Below, one piece after another: positions 15,252 through 63,847 of a stretch of 64,000 bases of DNA. Each line of letters begins with the position of its first letter. Positions within the stretch are counted from its first letter, which is position 1. The notes under the pieces were generated by a model. That model was not told the origin of the DNA. It worked only from the letters and a program-made list of their open reading frames with translations, and ran no database searches. A program made the translations under genes and the position numbers. Location: the sequence record OP589283.1. One strand, written 5' to 3'.

Positions 15252-18200
15252 TTACATAAATACATCAAAAGGAGTGCGACAACTACTTACAGGAAGAGTA
15301 TCAGGCTCTAAACTGAGTTCATACAGTTCATTACCTGTCACATCATTAAACACGTTACCGAGTTCATGTCCTGCAATGTCTAACATCATTTCTGCTACTT
15401 GGTCTCGACTCCACTGAAGGATGTCCAGTGTAGTAGTACTAATGTTAGGTTGGTCTCCAGTGTCTAATCGCAAACACCAGAAGAAGGTAGGACTGTCTTG
15501 GCCTTTACGGTGAATACGTGCTTTAGTTTGAATCACTTCATAATCCCTATACGGGACATCAATCATAATCAGTTGGTTAGCCATTGTAAGTGGATAGCCT
15601 TCCTTTAGACTTTTGTATGTCGTGATTAACGGGTTGGTATTAGGGTCATTTTCGAACCGTTTAATCTCGCTGTCTGTATTTCCTAGATTCTTACCCGTAA
15701 TAGTAACTGGCTTAAATCCATTAGCAAGAAAGTATTCTTCAGCTGCTTCTACCGCTTCCACATACGTACTGAAAAACAACGTTTTCTTTTCGACATGGTT
15801 AACTAGCTCAATTAATCCAGCGTGCTCGATAATCGCTTTAGCGCATTCTCTTCGAGCTGCACCAAATACGTTACCAATTACTTCCCCTTGAATTTTCAAA
15901 CTCACGTATTTTACCGCGGAACAATTAGAACGAAACTCTAACCGTTCTCTACCTGCTAATACACCTTCTATTTTTTCTTCAACACTTTTACAGAATTTAC
16001 TTTTATCTCCATCTGTAAAGGTATTGAATCCTCGCTTATTGAAGTCATGAACATAACGCTTGTACAATTCAAGTTCTTGTAATGCAGTTGCATCACGTTT
16101 AATCTTTTCTTCGTACTTATCAACACACGCAAGATACTGCGAACGAATAGAAGGAAGGTTAGCTTGATAGAAAGCATAGCGTTCCCGGATGTAGTTCAGC
16201 ATTCTTAAACGGATGTTTTCAATAGTGAATTGTTCGGCTCCTTTAAAGCTGACATTAATCACTTCGGTATCGGGTGCTTCATCCATTCCGTCGATTGCCG
16301 CAATTGTAAACTTGTTACGTCCAATCCGACGAGCAAACAGTTCATTTAAACGCTCTCTACCGCGTCCATACGCATCTTTAAACCGATCCCTAGCCAACCC
16401 TACGAACAACGGGTCTGTTAGGCTAAAAATAGCGTAGGATTCTTTACTGCACGCTTTCAATGGAGTACCACTCATAGGGAGAGTATGGCTAAAGTATCCT
16501 TTGTCAGATAACTCAATGATCATTTGGGTGCGGTTAGAAGTGGGTTCGTTGAAATTATGACATTCGTCTATAATTAATTTAAACTGATTACCTGATTTCT
16601 TATAGAACATCATGAACCGTTCGAATTCTTCAAACCCTTTGTTGGTTAAAAAATCATAATGCAAAATAAAGAATTCAACCGATGTATCTAGTGATAATCC
16701 ACTCATACTTGTCCAGTAAGGTGGTACTACTCTAAACTCTTTATCCAACGTTTCTTTCCATACTTTATCAACCAATTTAGGGGGACAAAGAATAATCGTT
16801 TTTGTGTTGTTCCCATTTAACATACGGGACCACATTAATGACAAAATCGTATTATGTGTCACAATAAAGTCATCAGTGATGTACAAATGACTTGGGTGGT
16901 CAACAGAAATACACTGAGTTAACTCATTAGCACGTTTTTCAATATTGATTATCTCTAATTTGAGATTATCAGAATACTGAGTTTGTGTGGCTCTCTCGCG
17001 CTTATGAGTTAACGTAAACAACTCCTCAGGTCGAGGATACCGAATGGACAATCGATAATCTGTTCTTCCTGATTTCTTTTCTCCTTTGTAAGAGTAATGT
17101 GGGATTCTGGTAGATAACAGTGCTATACCTCCTAAACTCCGCACTAGATACTGCACACCTAAAGCAAGTTGTTTAGAACTGCTTGAGAAACTAATTGTTT
17201 TATTGGTGCCCGATGTACCATCAGTATCCAAAAGACCTTGCAACAACTCCAATCGCTGTTGTTTGTTTGAATTTAAAAGATAGTCTACGGGAATAACTTT
17301 TTCCCAAGAACGTTTACCCATTAAATCCATTTCCCTTAAATCTTTTGTTATGTGAGAATCTACTGCTTTCTTTGTTCTTGGTGTGTTTAATGTAATGTTG
17401 AAAGTTACATCGTCCACCCATTTACAAGAAAGATGGGGCGGCAACAATTTCTGCACCTTATCAAACAACTCTTGATAAGGTTTAGATATGTACGGAGTTG
17501 AGCCAGAAAGACTACCGTCACCCAACAATACACCCATTAAATAAGGATGGATTTTGAATTCTTTGGCTGGTCCATCCTCGGGCTCACACAAAGGGATATA
17601 TATACGTTCATTTTTATTTTTCTTTAGTCTTTGCATTATGTAACGTAAAGACTTGGTGTGCCATCTTTCACCCCACGGCTTACCCTTTACCGCATCTTTA
17701 TTTTTTTCGTAGATGTCCCAAAGATGGTCTGGGTTACAATCTGTGTGACGCCCATCTTTGAAATGCACACGATAGACTTCGGTAATGCCCTGCGGGAATA
17801 CCCCTGTGACTTTGGTATGAGAACCGTCTTTTGCAATAACGGTATCTCCTACCTTGATATCCCCCATTTTCTTCCACCCATTAGGGACTTTAAGTAAAGA
17901 AGATAATGTCTGAGCTTTCCCTGAGCCTGCTTTACCATCTAATAACAACCCTTTTAACTTGTAATTCTTAGTGATTGTTAGGTAACTATCAAGAAATTCT
18001 TTTTGTGTGGGAAAGGGTGTTTTTATAAATTCAGCTAAATAACTTTGTAATGCTTGATAAGGAACTGGATTAATCGTATTTTTAATCCATGTCTCGCTCT
18101 CCAGTAAATCTTTTAACTCAATTAGCTGTTTGCGTTTTGTCGCTGTTCTGCGGACTGTTAGTAATCTGGATACAATGTGGTGAAGTTCTAATAAAAAGAA

Positions 18201-18371
18201 TTCACGAGTACGGATAACACTACCGCTTCGTAAAAACATGTACTTACCAATCACCGAGGTATTATAAAGACGCCCGATGTCGTATTCAAGTTTACGGGCA
18301 TCGATACCTTTAATTTCCACTCCACCCATTTCGTTGATTGTTATTCTCACAGAGAAGAAATCAAATAACAT
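15252..18371 (-). CDS. superfamily 2 (SNF2/DEAD-like) helicase containing an intein
   Basis: Walker A DGKAGSGK|T (after intein removal), LIIDECHNF, MSGTP, FFSTYV, SLKEGYPLT and QTKARIHRKGQ. Confidence 0.9.
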   Translation of the reverse strand: MLFDFFSVRITINEMGGVEIKGIDARKLEYDIGRLYNTSVIGKYMFLRSGSVIRTREFFLLELHHIVSRLLTVRRTATKRKQLIELKDLLESETWIKNTINPVPYQALQSYLAEFIKTPFPTQKEFLDSYLTITKNYKLKGLLLDGKAGSGKAQTLSSLLKVPNGWKKMGDIKVGDTVIAKDGSHTKVTGVFPQGITEVYRVHFKDGRHTDCNPDHLWDIYEKNKDAVKGKPWGERWHTKSLRYIMQRLKKNKNERIYIPLCEPEDGPAKEFKIHPYLMGVLLGDGSLSGSTPYISKPYQELFDKVQKLLPPHLSCKWVDDVTFNITLNTPRTKKAVDSHITKDLREMDLMGKRSWEKVIPVDYLLNSNKQQRLELLQGLLDTDGTSGTNKTISFSSSSKQLALGVQYLVRSLGGIALLSTRIPHYSYKGEKKSGRTDYRLSIRYPRPEELFTLTHKRERATQTQYSDNLKLEIINIEKRANELTQCISVDHPSHLYITDDFIVTHNTILSLMWSRMLNGNNTKTIILCPPKLVDKVWKETLDKEFRVVPPYWTSMSGLSLDTSVEFFILHYDFLTNKGFEEFERFMMFYKKSGNQFKLIIDECHNFNEPTSNRTQMIIELSDKGYFSHTLPMSGTPLKACSKESYAIFSLTDPLFVGLARDRFKDAYGRGRERLNELFARRIGRNKFTIAAIDGMDEAPDTEVINVSFKGAEQFTIENIRLRMLNYIRERYAFYQANLPSIRSQYLACVDKYEEKIKRDATALQELELYKRYVHDFNKRGFNTFTDGDKSKFCKSVEEKIEGVLAGRERLEFRSNCSAVKYVSLKIQGEVIGNVFGAARRECAKAIIEHAGLIELVNHVEKKTLFFSTYVEAVEAAEEYFLANGFKPVTITGKNLGNTDSEIKRFENDPNTNPLITTYKSLKEGYPLTMANQLIMIDVPYRDYEVIQTKARIHRKGQDSPTFFWCLRLDTGDQPNISTTTLDILQWSRDQVAEMMLDIAGHELGNVFNDVTGNELYELSLEPDTLPVSSCRTPFDVFM
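16851..17915 (-). mobile_element. class 3 intein (355 aa, Ala1) with LAGLIDADG homing endonuclease, in helicase Walker A
   Basis: Starts AQTLSSLLKVPNGW; block B DHLW; block F TQCISVD; ends IVTHN followed by Thr; endonuclease motifs YLMGVLLGDGS and LLQGLLDTDGT. Confidence 0.92.
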
Positions 18372-18402
18372 AAGAATCTACCCATATTAAATTATTGAAA
18401 AC

Positions 18403-18419
18403 CTATATCATTTATTGGA
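18403..18419 (+). promoter_or_regulatory. putative early promoter variant CTATATCATTTATTGGA
   Basis: CTATATCA core, 30 bp upstream of the 18450 ORF; 3' GTGA element imperfect. Confidence 0.45.
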
Positions 18420-18449
18420 TAATGTTACTTAATTAGGATAAGAAACAAT

Positions 18450-18665
18450 ATGAAATTATTCTTACTAATTTACATCTTTATGTCTTTTATGTTCACACCC
18501 TATAACAGCGTAACCTATTACGGTTTTGAAACAGTAGGGTATGACCCTTCGCTTTGGTGTACATGGGTTCACCCTGACCACGAAACCCGTGTATTAAAAA
18601 GTTCTAAAGCATCTGCGATGACTAAAAAATTAATTGGTCGTCCAAGTGATTATGGCAATTGTTAA
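18450..18665 (+). CDS. small protein with N-terminal signal/anchor-like segment
   Basis: MKLFLLIYIFMSFMF hydrophobic start; AGGA SD. Confidence 0.55.
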   Translation: MKLFLLIYIFMSFMFTPYNSVTYYGFETVGYDPSLWCTWVHPDHETRVLKSSKASAMTKKLIGRPSDYGNC

Positions 18666-18720: not shown

Positions 18721-19455
18721 ATGATTCGTATGATTCTTGCAATTAACAACGAGTGTTTTATCGGTAAAGACAACAAACTTATGTATCGTTTAAAAGGCGA
18801 TATGTTAAACTTTAAAACCATGACCCAAGGCGGGATTGTGGTTATGGGTCGTAAGACATTCCAAAGTTTAAAGGGTGCTTTACCCAATCGTACTAACTAT
18901 GTCATCACCAGTGACCCAACAAGCATTAATCACCCATCGGAACTCATCTTGACTCCGGAACAATTCAAAGAAGAGTTTCTCCCACACCATAAAGTAAGTA
19001 ATGATAATGTGTGGATTATTGGCGGTGCTCAAGTGTATGAAACTGCCACTCCTTTCACTAGCGAAATCATCTGTACATTTGTGGATGATGACGAAGTAGG
19101 TGATGTAGCGCTAAAACCTAAACTCTTTGGCGGGTTTACTCATTTGGCGACATTAAAGTCTGTTGATGTGGATGAAGACAACGATAAACCTTATGAAATC
19201 ACCCAGTTAGTGAGACATGAGGATTTAGAACATAAACTTCGTGAACTTCAGGCTCAACAACATGAGATGGAGAAAGAACAGACTCAGAATAATCTTAGCA
19301 CTCCGTTAGAAAATGGCGGGTTAAGACAAGGTGAAGCTTTTGTTATAGCTGCGACTACTTCGGCTGCGCTATCACAAATCGATACCGAATCCAGAGAAGA
19401 CTCCAGTGATTCTGATTCAAGTTCATCTGATTCAAGTTCTCCATCATCTGACTGA
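18721..19455 (+). CDS. folA: dihydrofolate reductase with C-terminal coiled-coil and Ser/Asp-rich extension
   Basis: MILAIN..FIGKDNKL, GDMLNFK (Asp27 equivalent), VVMGRKTF, LPNRTNYVIT and WIIGGAQVY. Confidence 0.92.
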   Translation: MIRMILAINNECFIGKDNKLMYRLKGDMLNFKTMTQGGIVVMGRKTFQSLKGALPNRTNYVITSDPTSINHPSELILTPEQFKEEFLPHHKVSNDNVWIIGGAQVYETATPFTSEIICTFVDDDEVGDVALKPKLFGGFTHLATLKSVDVDEDNDKPYEITQLVRHEDLEHKLRELQAQQHEMEKEQTQNNLSTPLENGGLRQGEAFVIAATTSAALSQIDTESREDSSDSDSSSSDSSSPSSD

Positions 19456-36088: not shown

Positions 36089-39000
36089 TTATTTTAACGC
36101 GACTGTCATAGGATCATTTTTTGATTGATTCATTTTCTGCAATTCAACCAAAATATTCGCCAACAGTTTAGAACTATTTGGATCATTAGTGTTGATGCCT
36201 CCCGCTAACAATTTCTTCAGTTCATCGTTGTTGTTAATCACTTGAACTGGAGTAGGTGCCGCAGGAGTCTCTTTAGGTAATGGTGCAAGTGACGCAGGTA
36301 CACCATCAGGCTTAGTTGTACCAGTAGGTTGTGTCGCAACTTGTTTGTTAACAACACTATCATCAGGCGCAGCCACTCCTGCAAACGGAATACTGGATTT
36401 CTGGTATGGTGCTTTCTTTGGAATAGCAGCAGTAGAAACTGTCTCAGCTTTCTTATCTTCATCCTTGTTTTCTGCCGTTAACGTTCCGTCTACTAAACTA
36501 CTTAAGTAATCTTTGTAATAACCAAAACGTTTATCCATATCCGGTAAGTTTGCATTCACCCCTTGTGAAGCAAAAGCAAAGTTATCATTCTCCGTGATTG
36601 TTCGCATCTTTTTGTTGCTAGCAAAATATTCTACGAGAATCTTGGCCATGATATTTGGGTCTTCACTGGCAAGTTTAGGGTTACCCACTAAATCTAATCC
36701 CAGTCTATCCCCAATTGACTTATAGTTGTTCTTACCGGTTAATTGAATGAACCCGCGACCGCGATAGCGCCATCCATCCCCCGGATTAGTGTTACCTAAA
36801 CTAAGTCCTTTTGCACCTCCATAAACCGTGTTAGCCGTAGTCACAGGACCTGCTTTCATTAAGCTACGTGCTTGCTCGATCGTCTTCACTTCACTGAATA
36901 AGTCCACCATCCGTTTAGGGTCGGTGTATTTCAGGTTCTCTGTCGACTTCTTAAATCCACCGGACTCCACGTAAGCGTTTGCTAATACTAACGCAATTTC
37001 ACGTGGGTCGGTAAATCCTCTCGCCAGCATTTCCTTAATAATAAGCTGTTCTGCTAACTCCCTTGGTACACTAATACCTTGGTCGTCTCCTTCGTTAGCT
37101 GTGACACCACCGTAGTCCAACATTTTGGTGTCAGTGTTACCTTTGATGGGTTCAAAATAGGTTTTGGTGTAAGTATTACCACCATACCCACCTGCTAACA
37201 TAAAGTCTTTACGACTCTTCGCATCATTCCCTGTTGTGCGGTTAGACGTGTAAAGAGTTTCTTGTCCCTTTGTGTTGGTTTCAACAATCTTACCTAAATA
37301 AGCTTTCGTGCTTGTCCGTTTTGCTTCCGCAATAGGGTCAATCAAATTAGCACGAGAAGATTTCTCTTCCAACACACTTAAATAAGCAAGAATCTTTTCT
37401 CCCAATTCATCATCGATACCGTCTTTAAATGCACTGTATGATGTCGTTTCAATAACAAGGTTGCGACGTCCTGTTAATGATTTCGTTAGAGTAAGTGCTT
37501 TTGCAATTTTGTACTTAGCGGTCGCAGATAGTTTCGTCCAGTTTTTACCTGGGGCACCTGTACCGTACTCATTGTAATAACTCATGTACCCTAAGAATGC
37601 AGGTAAGAATCGACTGTTGAACCAGTTAATCCATGTTCCACGATTTGAGACGTTATTACCAAACACACTGGAAACTTCGCTGTAAACATCAATAGGTGTT
37701 TTTGAGAAGGTGACTTCTTGCCCATTGATGGAAACGTACTTCTCACAGTAACGTTCTAAATACAGTACAGCTTCCACCTCGCTTTGATTAATTAACGATA
37801 CCCCATACATCCCAACTCGTAATGCGACAAATGGGTCTAGTGTACCATCTTCAGGCATCAAATCAGTAACGGATAAATCATTACCACTCTTAAACTTAAC
37901 CACCGCTTCGTTATTAAGGAATTTCAGTTTTTGTTCAACATCCTGTAATTCTCTTAAGTTAGCAGTGCGTTCAAAATAGTTTTTACCGTTAAAGTTATCA
38001 TCCCTAGCGATTTGTTTTAACTCATCGCGTTTAGCTTCTAATGACGCCTTAGATTCCATTTTTAACTGTGTTGTTACATCAGTCTTTAACGCATCACCTA
38101 ACAACTCTTTCCAATCTTCAAAAAGATTATCGGTAAAGGTTGTGGTATTATCCAAGTTAATCAGTAAGGTATCTTTATCAATACGTGGGGTGACGTCGTA
38201 GACATTAGGGGTGATACCGTTGATTGCACGTTGAACGTCTTTAGCGATACGATAACGAATAATATCTTCGTCACTGTCATAAGCTTCCATGCCTTTAACG
38301 TCTAAAGCCTGCATGGTTCCACAGTAATTCAGGAACACAGGTTTAAACCGGTAAGTAAACCAAGATAAGAACGCTTCTACTTCTTTACCATCTTTTGGAT
38401 TTTGTAAGAAAAGTCTTAGCATCCCTTCCACATCAGCTTGTTCTGATAAACTTGCAGATGTACCTTTAATGACAACATATTCTTCTAAGAAACGTTCTAA
38501 GTTGAATACCCGAGCAGCAAGGTCACTTTGGGAATCAGCAACACCATACTGTGCCATACGAATTTGAGCAGGAAGTTTTGGTTTATCAAAATGTTTATAA
38601 GCTTTGTATGCGCCGTAACCAACCGCACCTACGGCCGCTGCACCGATTACCACAGGCCAAGATAACAATCCTGCAATACCAGCCGCTGCACTGCTTAATA
38701 AACCACCTACACTGTAACCACCTAATCCTAACACAGAGTTTGCCATACCCCATGTACCTGCTACCCCTAATGCGGTAGACGCTACACCAGAGACGTCATC
38801 AACAAGACCACCTTCTTCCACTATACCAGAAGACACTAAAGCACTGGTGCCATAACTTAATGCTGCGCCAGCCCCTAACAGTTTACCTCCTTTAAGGAAA
38901 CGAGAAACGGCTTTACCTTTATTACCCGCTTTTACTTTTTCTCGCTTGGCTTTTTCTTTGTCAGCTTTATTTTGTTTGCGTTGTTCTGGAGTTAGGTCTT

Positions 39001-42970: not shown

Positions 42971-43001
42971 ATGCTTACTCTCTTTTAATGAGGTTAGAAT
43001 A

Positions 43002-44462
43002 ATGAAACCAACCAGAATTAAATTATTAGACCCCAAAACAATTTTTCCACCTCTTATTAACGAAGTGAGTAGTGGGGACACGTTTGACCGGGGCACGCAC
43101 AACCTTCACGAAGAAGGGTTATATTCTCCTACCATCTTTGGTAGAATCGGACGTAAAGACCGGTTTTCCAAAGAAGGGTTTATCAATACGGGTGCACCTA
43201 TTTTAAACCCCACGTATTATAAAACTATCGTGGGATTGAACAACGGTCAAAACGGTTTATACGCCGGTATTTTGAAAGGGATCGTTTACGCAAAATGGGA
43301 TGCCCAGAAAAAGGATTTCATAAAATCCGATATCATCGAAGGAAGAACAGGATATAGTTTCTTTTTAGAACACTTATCTGAGTTCGCACCTGAGTTAAAA
43401 GATTCCCATTCCCGTAAGCAAGCCATTAAGTTAATTTTGGAAAACAAAGATAAAGCATTAATGAAACGCTTTATTGTCATTCCGGCAGGTTTACGGGATA
43501 TTGAACATCGCCCCGATGGTGGGGTTAAAGAAAAGGAAATTAATAAAACGTATCAACGTTTAATTTTCCGTGCCCGTTCTTTACAAGGTATTAACGAGCG
43601 TGATGAGAACGATCCTGTTTACGATAACTCTCGTGCATCCATTGGTGAAATTGTTAACGAAATAGACCACGAACTGTTTGAGATGTTAAACGGTAAGAGT
43701 GGTTTCATTCAATCTAAAGTAGGTACCCGTGGTTTAGTCAGTTCTACTCGTAACGTGATTGTGGCCAGACAAGTCAGTCGTACTCATTTAGACGAAGATG
43801 ACGGTAAAGGCATCAATAGCACCGATATCGGTTTATATCAAGCAATGTTGATGTACAATTATGCTTGTTTACATGAACTGATAAACGGTTGGTTATCCAC
43901 TATTTTTACAATAGGGGCTAACGTGGGTAAATTAGTTGATACCAAAACCTTAACTTCAGAATACGTGGATTTGAAACCAGACACCATCAGTAAGTGGACA
44001 ACCGTTGAAGGGTTAAATAAACTCATCTATGGTTTCAAGAACGTCCATCTACGCCATAAACCAATTGTGGTGGAAGGTTACTACCTTGGGTTAGTTTACG
44101 ACGATGGTAAAGAGGTTAAACTACTCAGTGACATCGGCGAACTTCCAGATGGAAGGGATAAAAAGTTTGTCACTCCATTGACGTACTTTGAAATGTTTTA
44201 TTTAATTTGTAACCAAGCCATTAAACAAAACCTGATGCAACAAACGCGTTACCCCATTATCGGTATCGGTAGTACGTATCCTTCTTATAACAATCTTGTT
44301 ACGGGAAGTGAAAACAAACCCCGTAACGTATTAAATGAAATGTGGGAAACCGAATATCGTTGTTTAAGTTATCCTGAGAAATCAGAACATCCAGTTTATT
44401 ATGACGCAATGTCTGTTGACATTAGTCGATATGCTAACTTGGACGCTGACAACGACGGCGAT
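43002..44462 (+). CDS. virion RNA polymerase beta' N-terminal subunit (phiKZ gp180-like), exon 1
   Basis: GLYSPTIFGRIG, VIPAGLRD, LNGKSGFI...RNVI, RYPIIG; ends at the catalytic LDADNDGD. GAGG SD before ATG 43002. Confidence 0.9.
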
Positions 44463-46263
44463 TTTCTTGTACATTAATAAAGATGTGATTATTGCACCTT
44501 CGTGTTCTATTTTATATAGATAAAACCGAGGAAATAACATGTCACTCTTTACTTTACATTATCTTAAACTTCCAGAGTCAAACATTACGTATGAACTCAA
44601 GAATGATTTTTTGTTCTACGATGGAGAAACCACTCTCCCCCACTTAACTTTTACTGACAGCCCAGATAAAGTGTTGGTTAAAAATCCGTCTCCTAAGAAG
44701 GAAGGTGACGCTTACCTTACACTGGATAGAGGGTTACTTATTCTTTTTGCATGTCGTCGTTTCTATCTTCCTCTCAGTTTATGGAGGATGGTTGATATTC
44801 AGTTTTTAGATGATAACACAAAAAATTATGACCCTCGTAACTTATATGTCATGTACAAAGAAAAAATACCCTATCCTGAATTGGAGGGATTTTACTACAT
44901 ACCAGGACACGAACTGAACGTCATCAATGAAAAAGGAGTGGTGTTTAATATTCCTTGCTCTAAACTCAGACCCCCGAAAATAAACAATGCGCACATTGAT
45001 AAGAACACCTACATCGGTACCACTGTAGAGATAAAACCTCATAAGTTTGTCACAAGGGTGTTACATCGATTACTAGGGTTGGTATTTAAGAACCCCCCCA
45101 AGGGTTATCCTAATTGTGTGGTAGACCATTTGAATGCGGTAAAGTACGATTTCTCATTGGATAATTTAGAATGGGTATCGTCAGGTGAGAATAATGACCG
45201 TGCTAAACAAATGGGGTTACGAACGGACAATAAACGAGTTGAAGTGTTAGACACTAAAACAGGTATAACGTCCACATACATCTCAGGTAATAGTGCAGCG
45301 GCCGCTATAGGCTGTTCTAACGGGATTTTGAGTAATGCGTTTACAAGTGGTTCTAGGGTAGTTAAAAAGCGGTGGAAAGTAAGGTACGTTGGAGAAGAAG
45401 TCAATTGGGATTCGATTTCAATCAAACCCAGCGGAAACTCAGAAGTAAAACCTATTTTAGCCAGAAATGTTGTGTCTGGTCATATTCGTAAGTTTCCGAG
45501 TGTAAGGGAAGCCATGCGAGTATTGTCAAAAGAAGGTGTACGCGTTCATTTGGCATCCATCACCAGACAAGTTAACAACTCTGCGGAGAAACGAATAACA
45601 GGCGGGTATGAATTCAAATACCAAGATGATAGTACACCTTGGCATGTATTCACTGAATGGGATGTAGAGGTATTTAGACGCGGCCTCAATACTCGTACAC
45701 CTGTTTATAACGTTACCGATGTTACCACCAAAGAGTCAACCATTTACTTTGGTTGGCAACCAGTTGCTTTATTAACTGGAGTAGAAAAGCGTGCTGTACT
45801 CATTGCAGCGGCTGAGGGTGGTATACTGGCTCGTAAGTTTAAGATAGTAAAGTTAAGGTAATAATGTATTATGTCCAGCTAGGCGCGAAAGCCCTAGACT
45901 GTTTTCCTTTGAATTGACTGGGACGACCACAAAAGTGAACCGCTACTGCTCATTAGAAATGATGAGTGACAGAGACGAAAGTCAGAAACAATGGTGTTCA
46001 CCTGCCCTATGCTAACCAATAACGCTAAGGGGTATTGACAAGGGTCTATCAGCAGCTAAGCTCCGTACGAGGGTTATCCCTCAGGAGAATGTCCAACGAC
46101 TAAGGCCTAGCCAGCCTGTACTCATGACATGGATTCGTTGTGGGGAAGTGGAGGAGACCTAAGGTTACAAAAGTAACTATGGTTAAGATATAGTCTGTCC
46201 CTGGCTTAAGAGCAAGGCGGGTGTCTGTGCACACCGGGTGTAAGTAATACACCGGACAAAGAG
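44463..46263 (+). mobile_element. group I intron (~1801 nt) carrying an HNH endonuclease ORF
   Basis: P AATTGACTGGGA (45912), Q ATCAGCAGC (46048), R GTCCAACGACTA (46091), S AAGATATAGTCT (46185); 5' exon ends in U, intron ends in G; splicing restores DGD-QLNANG in frame. Confidence 0.88.
44539..45861 (+). CDS. intron-encoded HNH homing endonuclease with three NUMOD1-like DNA-binding repeats
   Basis: VVDHLNAVKYDFSLDNLEWVSSGENN HNH motif; repeats KRVEVLD..TYISGNSAA, KPILARN..KFPSVREA and PVYNVTD..IYFGWQPVA; own GAGG SD. Confidence 0.92.
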   Translation: MSLFTLHYLKLPESNITYELKNDFLFYDGETTLPHLTFTDSPDKVLVKNPSPKKEGDAYLTLDRGLLILFACRRFYLPLSLWRMVDIQFLDDNTKNYDPRNLYVMYKEKIPYPELEGFYYIPGHELNVINEKGVVFNIPCSKLRPPKINNAHIDKNTYIGTTVEIKPHKFVTRVLHRLLGLVFKNPPKGYPNCVVDHLNAVKYDFSLDNLEWVSSGENNDRAKQMGLRTDNKRVEVLDTKTGITSTYISGNSAAAAIGCSNGILSNAFTSGSRVVKKRWKVRYVGEEVNWDSISIKPSGNSEVKPILARNVVSGHIRKFPSVREAMRVLSKEGVRVHLASITRQVNNSAEKRITGGYEFKYQDDSTPWHVFTEWDVEVFRRGLNTRTPVYNVTDVTTKESTIYFGWQPVALLTGVEKRAVLIAAAEGGILARKFKIVKLR

Positions 46264-46434
46264 CAATTGAACGCTAACGGGATTGTTGCAGAAGACAGTA
46301 AAGAAGAATGTAAAGGTTTATTCGGTAAACGTGACTTTTACATTGGTGGTGGGGATAACTTTTATTATACCCCGGTTACTGATACATTGGCTTGGTTGCT
46401 TAAATCTGCAACTTCGGGACTTAAATCCGTTTAG
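46264..46434 (+). CDS. virion RNA polymerase beta' subunit, exon 2 (56 aa, QLNANGIVAED...SGLKSV)
   Basis: Open 57-codon frame starting right after the terminal G and ending 8 nt before the beta gene; absent from the ORF track. Confidence 0.8.
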   Translation, partial: QLNANGIVAEDSKEECKGLFGKRDFYIGGGDNFYYTPVTDTLAWLLKSATSGLKSV

Positions 46435-46442: not shown

Positions 46443-49400
46443 ATGAAACAGGCACCTTTATATGAATTGTGGTATCGTAAGCTCGGGTTACGTAAAAAGC
46501 AAAACATTGCTAACCCAATGTTTTTGTCTTTAGCGGAATTGAGTTTACCGTTATACAGCACAATTCATTATTTAGCAAAACATGAAAATGAGTTAGGCCC
46601 CAGCCCAAGTGAAACGTTAATTTCAAATTGGTTGGGCGAAAACATTTACATTAACTTTGTGAACACCTATACTCCTTATATTGGGAGTATTGGCCCTGCT
46701 GTGTTTGATCTACGTAAAAACATTAAGAAATATCGTGCAAGTCATTTTAACTATAGTTGGATTATGAACATCAATGACGTCTATAAACGTCGTGAAAATT
46801 TGATTGTTTGGAACCACGCTTGTGCGAATAAAACGTTCAAAGTAAGAGCAAGTCTTTTTGCTACCTATGAACGTTATTATAATGATTTCCGTAACGTAAT
46901 CGAAAGTGTTAATACCGTTACTGAAAAAGGATTACGTAATCAATTTTTAAGAATTGAACTACCCAATCGGATGCCGAACTTTTTACGTATTAGTGATGAT
47001 TTAAATCATTTTGCTAAGGTGCGTAGAGAATACGCCAAAACCGGCAAGATGATGCTGAATAAAGAAATGATGCGTCAGACAAAAGGCGAAAGTTGCTATT
47101 GGGTATTAGAGTTACTCAGCTTCTTATTAACAGATTTAGCAACTAATAAGAAAGGGGAAGAAGCTGAAGAAAAAATTAAAATAAGTTTATTTAACCTACT
47201 CAATGATGAGTCTAAACATAAATTAAATATTGTGTTTAGTTATCAAGGTACCGGATTTGTCGTTAACCTTGGTTTATTAGAAAGTTGGTTTAAAGAGCTT
47301 CGCGATGATGGTAGTCGTGTTAATGGTTTCAAACGTTTCTATCTTTCTCTTATCAAGTTGTCTAGCACCGAAATGGTTTTAGAGGACGAAAATGAAGAGA
47401 TTAAAAACACTGTCGAGGAGACTACGGAAGAACCAGAGGAACTGGATGAAGATGAGTCAGAGGCGCCCATTGAAAAAGATGAGCAAAAGGTCGCTGTTCA
47501 CGATACTACTCCTATTCTTGATATTTTCGCTGATCAAGTCGATTCTGATGACGGAAGTCTTCAATCCGGAGGAGACGAGGGAGGGGAAGATGATTCTGGA
47601 GAGCCTGCTGAACAGTCGTGGACCGATCCAGTAGACGATAGTCTATTTGAAGAGCCTGAGGTTGCCACTGAGACGGATTCAGGTCGTAATGTATTCGCTG
47701 ACCCTTCCGCAGGTATTGAACGCAGTCTTCGCTTAAAAGGGAAAGAGAACGGTATTAGCGCAAGAGAATACGCTCTCTTTAAAAAGAAATCGGAGTCTTA
47801 TAAAAACATTGTGTTACCTAACGGTGAAACGATGGAAACGTTTATGAAGATAGACGAAAAAGAACTCCGTAATCTTGACGGTAAAATTAAGGGGACTTTT
47901 GAAACCGTAAAAGACCCTTCGTTATTACAGTCTCGTACTTCGGAATTGCGTAAAGGGTACGTGAAGAAGTTTTTACATAAAGACATCATTCGTACTTTAG
48001 TTGCTTTCCAAAACAGTGGTACCGCGTTAACTGATTTGTCTATCACTGAAGAGGGTGACAAAGAAGGGATGTATGAAATTTATAACGCGCAATTCCATCC
48101 TGTTGGGGGAACTGTTAAAACCGTTCCTATTCGCATGCCGAAAGTGCTACCTGACTGCACCATCATGATAGATGGTAATAAAAGCTATTTACAAAACCAA
48201 CGCATGGAACTCCCTATTCGTAAGGTGAGACATGACGAAGTAATGCTATCTAGCTTTTATGGTACACGATTAAGTTTAAAACGCAGCCGTATGGTGAAGG
48301 ACGATTATCATCTTTGGTTATTACGTCAAATCATCAAAGGGGATAAAATCAACGGTTATCAAATTGCATTGGGTCGTAGTAAAACAAGCCACTTAAAGGT
48401 TCCTCAACTTTATTACACGCTTGCAGCCAAATTTAAATCTATTGCATTTGATGACATGACCTTTGTTTTCTCAATGGACACGTTGATTGAAGAAGACCCA
48501 GCGATTGAAAAGTTGAATTCCCCTGATAGTGTAGTCATCGGTAAAAAGGGTGACAAATACATTACATTGGATGCGTTTAACAACGTTTATGTCGGGGATG
48601 AGTTAAAAGGTGGGTTTACTGAGTTAGTTAAAATCGACCAGCGCAAAGCTCCTGTTGATATGGTGAGTTTGTTGTTGAATAACGTAAACTTCCCTATTGT
48701 TATTTTGTTGTGTTATTATTTCGGTATCGATAAACTATTGCAGGTTACCAAAGCAAATTATCGTGTGGTACCGAGTAATGAGAAAACTGTCTTAACCAAT
48801 GACGAATTCAAAGTCGTATTTAACGACGAGACACTGGTCTTTAACCGTAACGACCGGGTGACCACGTTAATCTTTGGTGGATTAGTTGGGTTGAAAAACT
48901 TAAGTAACTTTAACAGAGTTGACTTAAATAACAACGATAACTTGCTTACGGTGATGGGTTCGGAAAGTAAAGCAAAAATCACTCACTTCTATGAAATGGA
49001 ACGGCTGTATCGTTTGTTCATCGACCCTATCACTAAAGATGAATTAATTCGTCTGAAGTACTCTGTTGACTTTGATTATTTGTTGTTGGATGCTGTTGAG
49101 CTATTAAAAGACAGTTATCACCGCAATGAAGTGGAAATTGAAGAGCAACGGATTAGTGGTTATGAACGTTTAGTTGGACACATGTACACGCAACTCTGTC
49201 GTGCTAACCGTGAATACGGTAACAAGACAACAGGTAAGAAAGTTTTCTCATTAAATCCTGATGCTGTGTTGATGGCCATCCAACTGGATACCAGTTTAAA
49301 CCAAGTGGAAGAGGTCAACCCATTCCACCAAATCAAAAGTGATGAGGAGGTTACGTTCGGTGGTACTGGTGGTCGCGGTGACGATGTAATGGTCGCCAGA

Positions 49401-49601
49401 ACCCGTGCTCAGCTACAAAGTTATCGTGGTGTGATTTCTGAAGCGCATAAAGACAACCAAAAGGTGGGGTATGTTACCCACTTAACGTCAGATGCTCGTA
49501 TCAGTGATTATCGTGGTAACATTGATAGCAAAGAAACAATAACCAATGCAGGACTAGCGTCTGTAACAGGTAACTTGTATTACGGTTCCTTTAAAGATGA
49601 T
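46443..49601 (+). CDS. virion RNA polymerase beta subunit N-terminal part (phiKZ gp178-like), exon 1
   Basis: IDGNKSYLQNQR, QVEEVNPF, VTFGGTGGR, GVISEAHKDNQKVG; ends ...GSFKDD. Confidence 0.88.
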
Positions 49602-49942
49602 CAACATAGGGTCCCCTTATTTGGAAACAGATAAGGTGCTATAACCTCTAATTGCTGGGAGGGTTTGTTAAACCTCATTACACCACTGCGTAACTGGAAA
49701 CGGTAAACGTGAAGGTTTGAAAAGTAATGAGCTGAACCTAGTCAGCAGCAAAGCACCTAAGGTATTGTTGAGATAACAAGATACGGTGTGCGTCCAGAGA
49801 CTATCGCTGAAATGCGAGTAGGGGTCTAGTGTGATTCCGAAACGGGGTTTGCTTACCGTGGACTGAAGAAGTCCTATACGGTTGCATGAAATATAGTCCA
49901 CTGTGTTCGATGATTTCTTATGGATAAGAATAGAGCACATTG
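49602..49942 (+). mobile_element. group I intron (341 nt) without ORF
   Basis: P AATTGCTGGGA (49650), Q AGTCAGCAGC (49740), R GTCCAGAGACTA (49792), S GAAATATAGTCC (49888); exon 1 ends GAU, intron ends G; splicing gives DD-PKR in frame. Confidence 0.88.
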
Positions 49943-51049
49943 CCCAAGAGAACCAGCTTCAGTAACGGCCAAGCATCTCAAATCATGGCGTCATCAGGTT
50001 ATCAAGTTAACCCAATGCGCACAGGTTATGAGGTAGTCATGCCACATCGAAACTACGACCTTTACACTAAGGTTGCTGAACAAGATGGGGTGGTTACTGA
50101 AGTTACCGATAAATATTTATTGGTAACTTATAAAGACGGTTCGACAGACACCTACTTGTTAGGTTATGAAGTGGGTTCTGCGGCAGGTGAGTATCATAAG
50201 CACAATAAAGTAACCGATTTAAAAGTAGGTGATAAATTCAAAGCCGGAGAGGTGATTGGATTTAACGATGTGTGGTTTGCTCGTGACTTCTATAATCCAG
50301 GGCAAGTGGCTGCTAAAACAGGTATCTTGACAGGTGTTGCGTTAACCCAAGGGATTAACGTTTACGAAGACAGTATTAGTATTAGTGCTGATTTCGCTAA
50401 AAAGTCAAGCTCCAGCTTCATTAAGCAGATTAGCTTTAGTGCGGCTTTAAAAGACACCATCGTTGAAAAAATCAAAGTGGGGCAAACAGTCGATCATGAC
50501 CAAGTGTTATTTGAGGTCATTGAAGAGAGTGTTGCAGCACTTAACGATGAGAATGAGGACGCGGCTGATATTAACCGTTTAGGCATTCGACAAGTTAAGA
50601 GTAACCACCACGGTGTGATTAAAAAGGTCGAGGTTTCCTACAATGGTGATTATGCTGATATGAGCAGTTCAGTCTTGAAGTTTGTTAAACCTAAAGACAA
50701 AGAAGTTGCTGACTTAGCAAAAGTCACTAAAAGCAAGATTGTTGACAACCGAGTATCAGGTGGTAAAAACGTTCCTCCTGGTCGTATCAAAGTCCGTGTC
50801 TACATTGATGCGGAAGAAAGCAGTGTGGTTGCTGACAAATTTGTAGTGGGTAACCAAATGAAATGTACTGTTAACAGTATTTACACTAAGCGCATGTACA
50901 CTCAATCTGGTATTCCAATTGACCTCACATTCAGTTATAAGAGTTTGTTTGGTCGGATGGTATTGAGTTTACGTGATAAGTTAGTGGGTAACCAGTTAAC
51001 TGAAATCGTTTCAAAACAATTTGTTGATATTTACAGGGGTGAACAATGA
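49943..51049 (+). CDS. virion RNA polymerase beta subunit, exon 2
   Basis: PKRTSF, YEDSISIS (equivalent of bacterial FEDSI) and DKFVVGNQMKCTV (equivalent of GDKMAGRHGNKG). Confidence 0.88.
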   Translation, partial: PKRTSFSNGQASQIMASSGYQVNPMRTGYEVVMPHRNYDLYTKVAEQDGVVTEVTDKYLLVTYKDGSTDTYLLGYEVGSAAGEYHKHNKVTDLKVGDKFKAGEVIGFNDVWFARDFYNPGQVAAKTGILTGVALTQGINVYEDSISISADFAKKSSSSFIKQISFSAALKDTIVEKIKVGQTVDHDQVLFEVIEESVAALNDENEDAADINRLGIRQVKSNHHGVIKKVEVSYNGDYADMSSSVLKFVKPKDKEVADLAKVTKSKIVDNRVSGGKNVPPGRIKVRVYIDAEESSVVADKFVVGNQMKCTVNSIYTKRMYTQSGIPIDLTFSYKSLFGRMVLSLRDKLVGNQLTEIVSKQFVDIYRGEQ

Positions 51050-60512: not shown

Positions 60513-60572
60513 TGGTTATGATCACTGAAATGTATCACAAAGTTAACACACCAAGATAACTTAAGAGAATAC

Positions 60573-60606
60573 CTCCTCCTACTCCCTTAATTGGGAGTAG
60601 GAGGAG
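60573..60606. terminator. 14-bp perfect hairpin between convergent genes
   Basis: CTCCTCCTACTCCC-TTAATT-GGGAGTAGGAGGAG. Confidence 0.7.
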
Positions 60607-60613
60607 TAAATCA

Positions 60614-63600
60614 TTACGCTGCTTTTTTTCTTTGCATCATGCGTTTGTTACGTGCTAGTTTAGCATCTTCCAAAATACTGTCCACAGTAATTGTGTTACG
60701 TGTGCTGTCTTCTGGAATGAGTTTTCCTAACTTAATAATTTCAGCTTCCAATCTTGCTGCTAAAATATTGTCGTTAGTTGCCATCAGCTCTTCGGTGTAC
60801 TGTCTAATCTTGTCCCTGATTTTATCAATAAATGCAATCAGTTCAGGGTCGAGTTTAGCGTAAGCTTCATTGCTGTCATTGGCCAGTAAGTTTTTGGTAT
60901 CAATCAATGCTAATCCTGTTGGAATGTTGTACATTTGTTTACTGACACCTAACTTAATGAACCAGTACGTTAACAACCACGCAATAACCAAGTCGTCGTG
61001 TTTATTAACATCGTGGTCAATACGCCCACCTTTAACACGCAGATTGATTAATTCATCACACAGTTTATCGTAACACAAACCATAACCAGTCACAGCAACC
61101 GCTTCTTGAATATACCCGTACATTGTCGCACGACTACTCGCGTTAGTATTAAACCCGAAGTGTTTCTTATATTTCAAGTAGAAGTCTTTATCACGGTATT
61201 GTGGTTTAGTGCGTTTAATCTCATCAATTTCCTTAGCGTATCTAACCGGGTCTTGATAGATTTGGTTAAACAGTTTTTGGAAGGGGTCTAACCCTAGTGA
61301 GTTAAGACTAATCAAGAGACTATCAATCATGTGATGCGCGTAGTTACGTTCAATGATTAACATAGAGTTAGGGATGGTCGATAATACATCCACCAAAACG
61401 CCTCCAACGTCATCTAGGAACGCTAAGGGGTATCTTCCTACTCCCACTACCTTACCTGTTCTAAAGCTCCGCATAACCACAGTACAGGCGTCTGAGTTAA
61501 TTGCAGAAGAAGTATCGCATCCCACTAGGATAAAATCGTTATAAGAAGGGGAACACATATTTGCAAATTCTTCTTTGGAAATAAACATATCCAAGAATAA
61601 TCCACTGCGTCGGTATTCCTTACTCCACATCACGTTTCGTTTAGCTTCACTAATCCCTACCCGTGTACGGTCATCAAACAGTTTATCTTCACCGTCTTCT
61701 ACCCACATTAACAGTAAGTCGATTTTAGCCCTACCGAGACCTAACCCTAGTTGGTCAATTGTCTTCTTCACCCAATCAGGACCTTTACCCAATTGCATGT
61801 AGTTATAAACCATAGACACACTAGGAGAAGTAGTAGCACGGGGAGATGCTTTAATCAACCTATCAATCAAATGACTTTCTGAGAAACTGTCGAAGAACTT
61901 TTCTCGCCATTCAGTAGAGTTCATCACCTTATCATACATGTATTCACCAGAAGGGTGTAATACGGTGTTAGGTGTGGTGATATAACTGATGCCATAAGGT
62001 AATCCGGCATTACGACAGTTTTCCATTTCTGTCAATGCTGAAGGTGTACAACCGTCGACAATCGCCCAAATCCAGTTAATATAACTTGGTTCGTCGATAG
62101 TGGTGGTTCCTACGGTTAAACCCCGCCCTAAGTCACCTGCGGCAGCCTCACCCTGTTGCGGCACACTGATAGTCATGACGTTAGTTTCAGCATCACCAAA
62201 ACTACGATAAGTTAAATACGTACCCGCGTCTTTATCTCGGTAGGTGGGGTTTACCAAATACTGAGGTATACAACTTCGGATAGATTTAACCGCTTCAATA
62301 AATTGAGCACGGTTATCTGACTTCAACGTAATAATGTGAGATTTATATCCCCGCCCTACGATATACGTTAACCAGAAGTTAATCACTTGGACTGAAACGG
62401 TGTTATGGGTAACAATGAAGTCATCGGTCACATACAGTTGATCTTGTGAATCCACTTCGATGCAGTATGCTTCATTGTGATGTGAATACTCCACTTTTTC
62501 AATGTACAACGTGTTATCTTGAGGTGGAACTTCCACTTTCTTGTACTTGAAATATTCCATGTCTTCAGAAAGTGTAATGAACAATCCCTCAGGAGTTTCT
62601 TTAGCAGTGCCTCCTAAGCTCCGTACGACATATTTCATGTCATGACGTAACTTTGTATTACTTAATGATAAAAACACTTTACCGTCGATTATAGACCCAT
62701 TAGCATCCATAAATCCTTGTACAAGGTCAAGACGTTGCTGAATACTTGCTTTAGTATAATCTGAAGGTAACCCTACATCCTGATAATTCGCATTTGGGTG
62801 TTTGTTGGCGATGTATAAATATTCACCATGTTGTTTCACCGTAAAGCAGTCAGGAGTGTGTGGACGCATTTGTTCAACAGTGATACCATCTTTTTTCATT
62901 ACTGTGCTGGTTACATCCATCCCTCCTAAGAAATAACCGTAGAAATAAGAATCCAGTAATTTCTGTTCTTTAAACTCAGTGGGGTGAATTAATGGTAATG
63001 AAAGTGTTTTGGGTTCATAATCTTTCTCTTTTAACAAGGCTTCAATTTGAGCAGTGGAATAATCTACTATACCACCAGTACGGCCTCGTTTCTTATCGTG
63101 AACTGTCCAAAGATGTTTAGTCCCTGTATTCAGTTTACGACCATCGCTTGTATGGAGAGTGTAGAGACGTTTAATCCCCTGAGGATGGATACCAATAACA
63201 CGGGACGTTTCTCCATCCACCGTGGCGATTTCATCACCAATGTTTAACTGTTCGATTTTACGCCAGTCACCCTTAGATGTTAAAATCTTCGTACCCTTCT
63301 CTTGCATCTTACCTTGTTGGCGAGGCATGATCATGTAGCTGGTAATGTGGTTTAAATAGCTCCAAATAAAACTGATATTACCCCGATTAGCCTTAAACCG
63401 AATAGTGGGTTTTAACTTACATACCTCACGTAAGAAATACCAGAAGTTACTTTTACATTCTTCATAAATCATCGTCTTCTGTTCATTAGTGAGGTCTTCA
63501 CTAAAGGGGTCAACACCTTTTAATAACGGGTTGTTTAACTGAAGCATAAAGTAATAGTTTTTATTACCTTGTAGTCTAAACAACTCTGATGTTCTTAAAA

Positions 63601-63847
63601 AAGATTCATTGGTTGTTTCTAAATCTGGTGCGGCTTTGTAGTTATAGAAATCTTTTAAGAACCGCACTGTTTTAATAGAAGATAAACTATCTTCGTAAAA
63701 GTGTGCCAATATTTTCTCATCTTCTGTTCTTGATGTGGAATCAATTCTTTTCTTTTCGTCATCATAAAGAACGGTAGGAAGGATAGGATTACCGAGGTGA
63801 GCTAATATTTGTTTAGCCACTTCTAAGTCTTGAATAGGTTGTGACAT
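60614..63847 (-). CDS. terL: terminase large subunit (phiKZ gp25-like) containing an intein
   Basis: FWYFLRE, Walker A MPRQQGK|T, Walker B TTTIDEP, YITTP, nuclease VGCDTS and KHDDLVIAW. Confidence 0.92.
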   Translation of the reverse strand: MSQPIQDLEVAKQILAHLGNPILPTVLYDDEKKRIDSTSRTEDEKILAHFYEDSLSSIKTVRFLKDFYNYKAAPDLETTNESFLRTSELFRLQGNKNYYFMLQLNNPLLKGVDPFSEDLTNEQKTMIYEECKSNFWYFLREVCKLKPTIRFKANRGNISFIWSYLNHITSYMIMPRQQGKMQEKGTKILTSKGDWRKIEQLNIGDEIATVDGETSRVIGIHPQGIKRLYTLHTSDGRKLNTGTKHLWTVHDKKRGRTGGIVDYSTAQIEALLKEKDYEPKTLSLPLIHPTEFKEQKLLDSYFYGYFLGGMDVTSTVMKKDGITVEQMRPHTPDCFTVKQHGEYLYIANKHPNANYQDVGLPSDYTKASIQQRLDLVQGFMDANGSIIDGKVFLSLSNTKLRHDMKYVVRSLGGTAKETPEGLFITLSEDMEYFKYKKVEVPPQDNTLYIEKVEYSHHNEAYCIEVDSQDQLYVTDDFIVTHNTVSVQVINFWLTYIVGRGYKSHIITLKSDNRAQFIEAVKSIRSCIPQYLVNPTYRDKDAGTYLTYRSFGDAETNVMTISVPQQGEAAAGDLGRGLTVGTTTIDEPSYINWIWAIVDGCTPSALTEMENCRNAGLPYGISYITTPNTVLHPSGEYMYDKVMNSTEWREKFFDSFSESHLIDRLIKASPRATTSPSVSMVYNYMQLGKGPDWVKKTIDQLGLGLGRAKIDLLLMWVEDGEDKLFDDRTRVGISEAKRNVMWSKEYRRSGLFLDMFISKEEFANMCSPSYNDFILVGCDTSSAINSDACTVVMRSFRTGKVVGVGRYPLAFLDDVGGVLVDVLSTIPNSMLIIERNYAHHMIDSLLISLNSLGLDPFQKLFNQIYQDPVRYAKEIDEIKRTKPQYRDKDFYLKYKKHFGFNTNASSRATMYGYIQEAVAVTGYGLCYDKLCDELINLRVKGGRIDHDVNKHDDLVIAWLLTYWFIKLGVSKQMYNIPTGLALIDTKNLLANDSNEAYAKLDPELIAFIDKIRDKIRQYTEELMATNDNILAARLEAEIIKLGKLIPEDSTRNTITVDSILEDAKLARNKRMMQRKKAA
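62402..63307 (-). mobile_element. class 3 intein (302 aa, Met1) with degenerate LAGLIDADG domain, in terminase Walker A
   Basis: Starts MQEKGTKILTSKG; block B KHLW; block F AYCIEVD; ends IVTHN followed by Thr; endonuclease motifs YFLGGM and FMDANG lack the catalytic acids. Confidence 0.9.

Follow-up and report, generated by a model that had tools for sequence, protein, structure and literature searches.

The final 64 kb of Shewanella phage FishSpeaker hold four self-splicing elements: a putative group I intron in each of two adjacent genes, those for the β′ and β subunits of the virion RNA polymerase (RNAP), and a class 3-type intein in each of two ATPase genes, those for an SNF2-like helicase and the large terminase subunit. 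The stretch that we analyzed (the window; 64,000 nucleotides, nt) is identical to positions 139357-203356 of GenBank record OP589283.1, which annotates no intron or intein at any of the four sites. We consider it about 80% probable that the four are independent selfish elements that occupy known hot spots and stand at different stages of the homing cycle. Only one link between any of them is supported: the two RNAP introns, located in neighboring genes, tend statistically to occur together. The elements are new and previously unannotated but of known kinds, and they reveal no new kind of system.

FishSpeaker is a 203-kb jumbo phage whose isolation host is Shewanella oneidensis MR-1. Its gene content (a GroEL-like gene, split multisubunit RNAP genes, and terminase) and best matches place it in the phage EL/RisingSun group of the nucleus-forming chimalliviruses. 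Positions below refer to the window (Table 1), and a slash within a sequence or between two positions marks a splice or insertion point.

Group I introns in the virion RNA polymerase genes

The open reading frame (ORF) at 43002-44477 ends in ...DADNDGDFLVH, whereas the 56 codons that complete β′ lie downstream in a different frame. In the intron-less Erwinia phage RisingSun, gp229 is continuous across this site (...DHDGDALSAIAVNGEDSKKE...); phage EL has the same split layout as FishSpeaker and reads DHD/GDQLSSHSVVAEDSK. We placed the junction of intron 1 at 44462/46264, giving ...DADNDGD/QLNANG..., because this keeps both length and motif relative to RisingSun gp229 and the intron-less homolog of Klebsiella phage Miami. 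Miami and Raoultella phage VB_ZK_P1 form a natural pair, 96 to 98% identical, in which the former has an empty site (GDFDGD-QLNSN) and the latter an occupied one, and the BLAST breakpoints between them coincide exactly with the predicted position after the third Asp (D3/Q). Junctions after GTACAT or at GAT/GTG (44484) were rejected, since the conserved DxDGD-QL is then lost or lengthened or stop codons are retained.

Within intron 1, positions 45853-46217 give a full-length match to Rfam RF00028 (53.9 bits, E = 6.9e-11; gathering score, 50). A guide GUC at about 45871, just 3′ of the HNH ORF, pairs with the exon GAU, and the ORF sits in a loop closed by an 8-bp helix of 44469-44476 with 45860-45867. 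The core is 65% identical in nt to that of the EL β′ intron, and a peripheral insertion is common to both. The ORF, which lies entirely within the intron, encodes a putative HNH homing endonuclease (Pfam HNH_3, E = 4.8e-9; weak NUMOD1, E = 1e-3) with an intact DH...N...NLEW...EN motif. The protein is 36 to 37% identical to EL gp185 and VB_ZK_P1 gp270, from the same gene site (30 to 37% when the β′-site gene of Photobacterium phage PDCC-1 is included), and 24% identical over 262 amino acids (aa) to gp210 of phage PhiPA3 (E = 3.7e-19). Intron 1, set within the Mg-binding DxDGD codons, thus would encode a nicking endonuclease of the I-HmuI/gp210 kind; because the HNH gene is still encoded, the intron could invade or damage intron-less β′ alleles of co-infecting relatives. 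The first-pass annotation had proposed such an attack on relatives, and gp210, of which the FishSpeaker protein is a homolog, provides a precedent (PMC11620839).

The neighboring β gene is split in a similar manner. Its 1063-aa ORF ends in ...GSFKDDQHRVPLFGNR followed by a stop, and the next ORF opens in ...PKRTSFSNGQASQ...; RisingSun gp230 is unbroken over the site (...GGTVDSPQRTSFASIQASQ...). The junction 49601/49943 (KDD/PKR) preserves length, yields a P1 of GAUC with GGUC that has a U.G pair at the splice site, and falls at the same position as in EL (HDD/VKR) and PhiPA3 (NDD/MKR). For EL this junction is proven by GXNNE2, a 98%-identical phage with a precise intron-less allele (CAT GAC GAT/GTG AAG CGA). 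An alternative junction for intron 2, 49607/49949 (DDQH/RTSF), is less likely, since 49601/49943 fits the EL/PhiPA3 site, the P1 U.G pair, the RisingSun Pro, and the EL Lys.

Joining the exons of both genes restores DxDGD-QL and DD-PKRTSF at the length of the intron-less homologs. Each intron is preceded by GAU and has G as its last base, and the guide GUC is kept in all aligned introns. Six introns (two each from FishSpeaker and EL and one each from PhiPA3 and VP4B) align with the invariant blocks AATTGCNGG, CAGCAGC, CARMGACTA, and ARATATAGTC; the intron 2 blocks AATTGCTGGGA, CAGCAGC, CAGAGACTA, and AAATATAGTC are common to intron 1 and the EL, PhiPA3, and VP4B introns. Compensatory changes are found in 24 of 50 predicted pairs of this alignment, which is small and in part made up of close relatives. 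Each intron contains one copy of the P7 motif ARATATAGTC, and the window has no other (two occurrences versus 0.36 expected). These features argue that both are group I introns, and we infer that their RNAs splice. The first-pass annotation had correctly described an HNH-bearing intron in β′ and an ORF-less intron 3.3 kb downstream in β; the distance between them is 3,339 nt.

In PhiPA3, the gp210 intron lies directly after two conserved Asp residues of virion RNAP β (Escherichia coli D675 region), and gp210 nicks the intron-less β allele and cripples phage PhiKZ (PMC11620839). Since the PhiPA3 intron sits at this Asp-Asp, FishSpeaker intron 2 is a nuclease-less occupant of the gp210-intron site. 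Such an orphan would be retained because only its exact removal restores the gene, and as a by-product its presence would destroy the target of a gp210-type nuclease. The claim that all four elements interrupt essential catalytic motifs needs correction for β, whose conserved Asp-Asp is near the active center and not in the catalytic triad itself.

HNH lineages and intron insertion points

The two FishSpeaker introns are a matched pair at the family level only: they are 44% identical to each other, compared with 50% for intron 2 and the EL β intron. The HNH genes divide by site. Those at the β′ site (FishSpeaker, EL gp185, VB_ZK_P1 gp270, and PDCC-1 gp150) match one another at E = 1e-47 to 1e-81, and those at the β site (PhiPA3 gp210 and VB_ZK_P1 gp272) at E = 1.5e-35, whereas cross-site matches reach only E = 1e-9 to 1e-19. 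FishSpeaker carries the β′ type only; the gp210-type lineage is absent from it. Given site-specific lineages, the FishSpeaker nuclease is therefore not expected to be the cognate enzyme of the β site, and the empty β′ and β sites are identical at only 20 of 50 positions.

The codons of the β′ Mg motif contain three clear intron points within 6 nt, plus an unclear case in PDCC-1: after the second Asp in EL, after Gly in CF8 and PS1, and after the third Asp in FishSpeaker, VB_ZK_P1, and VP4B. The related FishSpeaker and EL introns are thus 6 nt apart, and in both the guide GUC pairs with the last exon Asp codon, GAU; the second Asp codon of FishSpeaker is GAC, which may account for the shift. 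In β, introns also occupy a second point, after DDxKR and 9 nt downstream of the PhiPA3/EL/FishSpeaker site. This +9 site is used in VB_ZK_P1, with a gp210-like HNH gene, and in PS1 and CF8, both ORF-less, and Miami and VB_ZK_P1 form a natural empty/occupied pair here as well.

In PDCC-1 (L015 3920-5660), β′ exon 1 ends in ...LGGD and a stop, and the 3′ end of the intron is as in VP4B, whose exon 1 ends in ...GGDYDGD. The 12 nt for YDGD are absent from every frame of the PDCC-1 intron region, and the apparent splice site is preceded by C instead of U. For PDCC-1 β′, a deviating splice pattern, a very small exon, or a defective allele could be the explanation. In three IMG/VR contigs (L074, L075, and L077), the distance from the β′ match to the β match downstream is about 1.2 kb greater than in other loci, which suggests another insertion between β′ and β or in the N-terminal part of β.

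Class 3-type inteins in the helicase and terminase genes

Both inteins split Walker A between Lys and Thr (GK/T), as the first-pass annotation had reported. The helicase junctions are ...DGKAGSGK/AQTLSS...(355 aa)...FIVTHN/TILSL and those of the terminase ...MPRQQGK/MQEKGT...(302 aa)...FIVTHN/TVSVQ. Class 3 inteins are defined by the lack of an N-terminal nucleophile and by a WCT triplet (PMC2807308). Accordingly, neither FishSpeaker intein has Cys, Ser, or Thr at position 1 (Ala1 in the helicase, Met1 in the terminase), and both have Trp at block B position 12, Cys at block F position 4, and Thr at block G position 5, as well as the terminal His-Asn and Thr at +1 (...THN/T). The best PDB match of the helicase intein is the class 3 Msm DnaBi1 intein (6BS8), and block F aligns with RCVEVD of that structure. 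Such inteins are found in SNF2, DnaB, and RecG helicases and in phage terminases, mostly at the P-loop (PMC6195587), and the Lys/Thr position is the "classic" intein insertion in phage terminases (Kelley et al., PMC5050341). By sequence, both are class 3-type inteins, and we infer that they are capable of protein splicing.

Their nuclease domains differ, again as had been claimed. In the helicase intein, the LAGLIDADG motifs LLGDG and LLDTDG keep their acidic residues (Pfam LAGLIDADG_3, E = 3.2e-8, plus Hom_end_hint), and its nuclease is apparently active. The terminase intein has FLGGMD and FMDANG instead, in which the catalytic Asp is changed to Gly (motif 1) and to Asn (motif 2), as judged against the intact terminase inteins of Miami, ZPAH34, and N1M2; in Pfam it gave Hint matches only and no LAGLIDADG match. 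The motifs are degenerate in several clades. Because the FishSpeaker, EL, and RisingSun terminase inteins share the Asp-to-Gly change, the decay of this nuclease predates their split.

The helicase and terminase inteins of FishSpeaker are homologous (BLAST E = 3e-27; 25 to 27.5% identity) but not, as had been proposed, a matched pair. The helicase intein has closer counterparts in the armed terminase intein of Miami (47%) and the helicase intein of PhiPA3 (44 to 45%). A single branch (88/92 support) separates helicase from terminase inteins in a 13-intein tree, where the terminase inteins of FishSpeaker, EL, and RisingSun form a clade (100/99). Their near-identical C termini were described accurately, but LY(I/V)TDDF(I/V)VTHN is common to every relative of the family that we examined. 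Likewise, the insertion-site letters quoted by the first-pass annotation are accurate, but the likeness is confined to the GK/T codons: identity is 8/12 over ±6 nt and falls to 13/40 over ±20 and 17/60 over ±30. The target of an armed nuclease therefore does not resemble the site of its presumed disarmed partner, for the inteins or (20/50) for the introns.

The two inteins also appear to differ in how they were acquired. For the terminase, intein identity among relatives (36 to 41%) is below that of the extein (64 to 70%), whereas for the helicase of FishSpeaker and PhiPA3 it is above (44.8% versus 28.9%). This contrast points to vertical descent of the terminase intein and horizontal movement of the helicase intein among chimalliviruses, whose helicase counterparts occur both with and without an intein. 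The shortened intein (262 aa) of the EL helicase, gp166, has lost LAGLIDADG motif 1, and its branch in the intein tree is very long. Phage EL carries all four elements, with the HNH gene alone still armed.

The terminase intein is a sister lineage nearly fixed in its phage clade: 56 phage records cover at least 80% of the terminase, intein included, in tblastn. Across nine lineages it is 290 to 360 aa long, and no mini-intein version was seen among these. EL and GXNNE2 differ in it by nine synonymous and no nonsynonymous changes, nearly all in the splicing domain, which would thus remain under purifying selection. One could take near fixation over many genera, full length, and constraint as signs that a nuclease-dead intein has been kept for a benefit to the phage, for example timing the maturation of the packaging ATPase. 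We regard such domestication as very unlikely. An intein in an essential gene should in any case have its splicing domain under purifying selection; the nuclease-like part has a single EL-GXNNE2 difference, so that the selection test has no power there; inteins evolve faster than exteins; and intein-less terminases function in pTD1, VP4B, Kc263, Survivor, and pEt-SU.

Table 1. Positions of the introns, inteins, and host genes in the window and of insertion-point loci in relatives
Feature	Position	Strand	Basis or remarks
SNF2-like helicase gene, 1039-aa precursor	15252..18371	-	Pfam SNF2-rel_dom, ResIII, Helicase_C
Helicase intein, 355 aa (aa 153-507)	16851..17915	-	Class 3 type; A1, HLW block B, QCISVD block F, VTHN/T
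Virion RNAP β′ (N-terminal subunit) exon 1	43002..44462	+	Ends in GAT, third Asp of DADNDGD Mg-binding motif; RisingSun gp229 alignment
Putative group I intron 1, 1,801 nt	44463..46263	+	Short 5′ leader, HNH ORF, then ribozyme core; U before 5′ splice site, final G
Putative intron-encoded HNH homing endonuclease, 440 aa, own ribosome-binding site	44539..45861	+	Pfam HNH_3
Intron 1 ribozyme core (P2 to P9.x)	45853..46263	+	Rfam alignment
β′ exon 2, 56 aa plus stop, QLNANGIVAEDSKEE...SGLKSV	46264..46434	+	Translation; aligns to RisingSun gp229 C terminus and EL exon 2
Virion RNAP β exon 1	46443..49601	+	Ends ...GSFKDD (GAT GAT); blastp to RisingSun gp230
Putative group I intron 2, 341 nt, no ORF	49602..49942	+	Local Rfam scan; core motifs common to four related introns
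β exon 2, PKRTSFSNGQASQ...	49943..51049	+	Alignment to RisingSun gp230 ...DSPQRTSFASIQASQ...
Large terminase subunit gene, 1077-aa precursor	60614..63847	-	GenBank annotation
Terminase intein, 302 aa (aa 181-482)	62402..63307	-	Class 3 type; M1, HLW, YCIEVD, VTHN/T
β′ insertion points	Window 44448-44462, 46264-46269; L004 10429-10443 (EL); L014, L102 (CF8, PS1); L012, L013 (VB_ZK_P1, VP4B)
β +9 insertion site	L012 7100-8620; L016 3500-3910; L101 3300-3760

Co-occurrence of the elements among relatives

Each of the four sites was scored in annotated phage genomes, first by tblastn with intron-less or intein-bearing queries and then by inspection of loci (Table 2); for the two intron sites, scoring was extended to 77 IMG/VR loci (46 clusters at 90% identity). 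A scan of IMG/VR with the FishSpeaker β protein alone gave no matches; a four-sequence alignment was required. Nearly all combinations of presence and absence exist. The first-pass annotation had called for a co-occurrence matrix of the four elements. The introns show a positive association, uncorrected for phylogeny, although each also occurs alone; the inteins show none, with counts of 6 with both, 1 with the helicase intein only, 8 with the terminase intein only, and 2 with neither (Fisher p = 1). Even within one species the introns separate: EL has both, and GXNNE2 lacks the β intron.

Table 2. Presence (+) or absence (-) of the four elements in FishSpeaker and related phages
Phage or group	β′ intron	β intron	Helicase intein	Terminase intein
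FishSpeaker	+	+	+	+
EL and five close relatives	+	+	+	+
GXNNE2, GXNNA8	+	-	+	+
RisingSun, Joad	-	-	-	+
Miami group	-	-	-	+
phiKp_32, VB_ZK_P1	+	+	-	+
PDCC-1, 2 TSL-2019	+	-	+	+
phiKT1019, phiKT1028	-	-	+	+
VP4B	+	-	+	-
pTD1	-	-	-	-
Kc263	-	-	-	-
Aphrodite1 group	-	-	-	+
CF8	+	+	+	+
PS1, PS2	+	+	?	+
PhiPA3	-	+	+	?

Several observations weigh against four independent elements or against the way in which we classify them. Both introns are found in 5 lineages, the β′ intron alone in 2 or 3, the β intron alone in 4, and neither in about 50, an association with a Fisher p of 4e-4 to 9e-4 that ignores phylogeny. FishSpeaker and EL share both introns and yet are not sisters on the β tree, where EL falls within a well-supported clade of intron-less relatives; given this nesting, the association is probably real, and some coupling of the two introns exists, be it through linkage, co-conversion, or common exposure. 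A full-length remnant of the nuclease domain persists in all three lineages whose terminase nuclease is dead. At the RNA level, P1 of intron 1 consists of a 3-bp core (GAU with GUC) and an 8-bp extension, so that its 5′ junction rests mainly on the protein alignment. Intron 2 scores 28.1 bits (E = 2.5e-5) against RF00028 in a local scan of 441 nt, under the gathering score of 50; Rfam scans of the whole window, in gathering and E-value modes, did not detect it, and only the local scan did.

The coupling of the introns could reflect hitch-hiking, in which a nick by the β′ HNH enzyme starts a gene conversion whose tract often spans the 3.3 to 5 kb into β and brings along the ORF-less intron, so that the armed intron maintains and spreads the disarmed one. 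Besides the co-occurrence at the level of lineages, the adjacency of the two genes and the sharing of both introns by FishSpeaker and EL despite intron-less lineages between them favor this view, and T4 td and SPO1/SP82 are established cases of co-conversion and marker exclusion, to go by the references within PMC11620839 and PMC12908238. We nonetheless find hitch-hiking unlikely. GXNNE2, at 98% identity to EL, has the β′ HNH intron and a precisely empty β site; VP4B and PDCC-1 have the β′ intron only, and PhiPA3, 201phi2-1, and others the β intron only. CF8 and PS1 have both introns and an ORF in neither (VB_ZK_P1 has one in both), so an armed partner is not needed for co-occurrence. In the comparison of VB_ZK_P1 with Miami, similarity over the exon that separates the introns equals that of its surroundings (about 98%), with divergent patches only beside each insertion. 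This profile fits separate conversion events better than a single long tract, although it is not decisive; for EL, the nearest uncultivated relatives are just 62 to 77% identical, too distant to show tracts.

A stronger form, in which the introns are a linked mobile pair, with HNH-initiated conversion regularly carrying the β intron across several kilobases and the phage armed at one RNAP site while immune at the gp210-type site, seems to us quite unlikely. If true, it would explain why β′ and β introns co-occur across unrelated chimallivirus lineages and how a nuclease-less intron persists and spreads.

Another alternative is the integrated system proposed by the first-pass annotation, in which each armed intron or intein mobilizes or protects its disarmed partner and the four splicing steps serve as condition-sensitive checkpoints on transcription, replication, and packaging. 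All four host genes are essential, and class 3 inteins can sense redox state and zinc (PMC6195587 and PMC7360933); the claim that class 3 splicing can be redox sensitive thus has a precedent, in Msm DnaBi1, the closest solved structure to the helicase intein. A second Cys in block B of the helicase intein (TDCNPDHLW) might pair with the catalytic Cys. Against integration, the inteins are 27% identical, lie about 45 kb apart, have dissimilar targets, and are uncorrelated in distribution: RisingSun has the terminase intein only, VP4B the helicase intein only, and pTD1 neither, and in EL both are present with both nucleases degenerate. Occupancy would protect an occupied site, so that part of the proposal stands, but site-specific HNH lineages and unlike intein targets speak against mobilization or protection of a partner. 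Insertion into conserved motifs is general for selfish introns and inteins and needs no regulatory explanation (PMC2814812 and PMC12908238). We therefore judge an integrated system highly improbable; cooperation between the inteins and regulatory checkpoints are unsupported, and the four-checkpoint idea is speculation.

Comparison with known systems

The closest experimental precedent for the introns is the PhiPA3 gp210 intron (Birkholz et al. 2024, Science, PMC11620839), from the same virus family and gene: FishSpeaker intron 2 lies at the same codon position, the ribozyme cores are related (about 50% nt identity, with shared motifs), and the ORF precedes the core, as in FishSpeaker intron 1. 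Unlike in PhiPA3, the FishSpeaker β intron has no nuclease gene, and the HNH gene is in the neighboring β′ DxDGD and of a separate, β′-specific lineage; moreover, gp210 activity was shown by experiment, whereas that of the FishSpeaker HNH protein is predicted.

Phage EL (NC_007623; gp184, gp185 HNH, gp186, and gp187, with helicase gp166 and terminase gp011) has all four elements in the same four genes. The β′ cores are 65% and the HNH proteins 36% identical, the β intron site is identical, and the terminase inteins are sisters. EL differs in that its β′ intron is 6 nt upstream (DHD/GDQ, versus DNDGD/Q in FishSpeaker), its helicase intein lacks LAGLIDADG motif 1, so that both of its inteins are disarmed, and its host is Pseudomonas rather than Shewanella; nor are the two phages sisters on the β tree.

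The inteins resemble class 3 inteins of phage helicases and terminases (Tori et al. 2010, PMC2807308; Kelley et al. 2016, PMC5050341; PMC6195587) in the absent N-terminal nucleophile, the WCT triplet, Thr at +1, and the P-loop Lys/Thr site in an SNF2 helicase and a large terminase. Mycobacteriophage RecB and TerL1-d are a reported example of such relatedness between inteins of different ATPase genes. In contrast to those of actinobacteriophages, the FishSpeaker inteins are in a chimallivirus jumbo phage of a Gram-negative host, and they carry LAGLIDADG domains, whereas DnaBi1 is a mini-intein. In both, the block F Cys would be the site of the class 3 branched intermediate.

A nuclease-less intron near a homing nuclease gene recalls collaborative homing and co-conversion, as in T4 td/nrdB, SPO1/SP82 I-HmuI/II, and the cyanophage psbA intron with free-standing F-CphI; the FishSpeaker enzyme is likewise of a nicking-type HNH family, and the introns show a statistical association. 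In collaborative homing, the enzyme cleaves the same site at which the ORF-less intron resides. The FishSpeaker HNH lineage, in contrast, is tied to another site, 5.1 kb away, with a dissimilar target.

The β′ DxDGD codons and the β Asp-Asp region are thus recurrent intron targets in nucleus-forming jumbo phages, with three clear points within 6 nt in the former, two points 9 nt apart in the latter, and a separate HNH lineage for each site. Together with corrected gene models, this map of closely spaced points is a useful by-product of our analysis. It widens the view, derived from PhiPA3 and PhiKZ, of an intron nuclease as a weapon, and predicts which phages would be armed, immune, or vulnerable at each site.

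Gene models and annotation

The record OP589283.1 is wrong at four genes: a β′ exon is missing, a β exon is truncated, and two intein-containing precursors are listed as mature proteins. The GenBank β′ coding sequence extends to 44477, 15 nt into the intron, which adds the intron-read FLVH, and β′ exon 2 is unannotated; the coding sequence given for β exon 2 starts at 50039, 96 nt downstream of the inferred splice acceptor. In tblastn, β′ matched 310 chimallivirus records. A Pfam scan of ten further large ORFs of the window found no extra Hint, HNH, or LAGLIDADG domains. Our literature search found no paper that mentions FishSpeaker, and the jumbo-phage reviews that it returned treat introns and inteins in general terms only.

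Elsewhere in the window, 4259-5890, 18721-19455, and 36089-43102 code for a GroEL-like chaperonin, a DfrA-like dihydrofolate reductase, and a 2337-aa protein, respectively. Phage EL is also known to encode a GroEL-like chaperonin. The 2337-aa protein is named tail fiber in GenBank, and its counterparts elsewhere are named endolysin or chitinase. Many intein-bearing terminases and helicases of chimalliviruses carry names such as "DarB-like antirestriction," "putative ATP-dependent DNA helicase," and "gyrA: DNA gyrase subunit A" (for example, in NC_042100.1, NC_070950.1, NC_071007.1, and NC_007623.1); the intein domains probably gave rise to these erroneous names.

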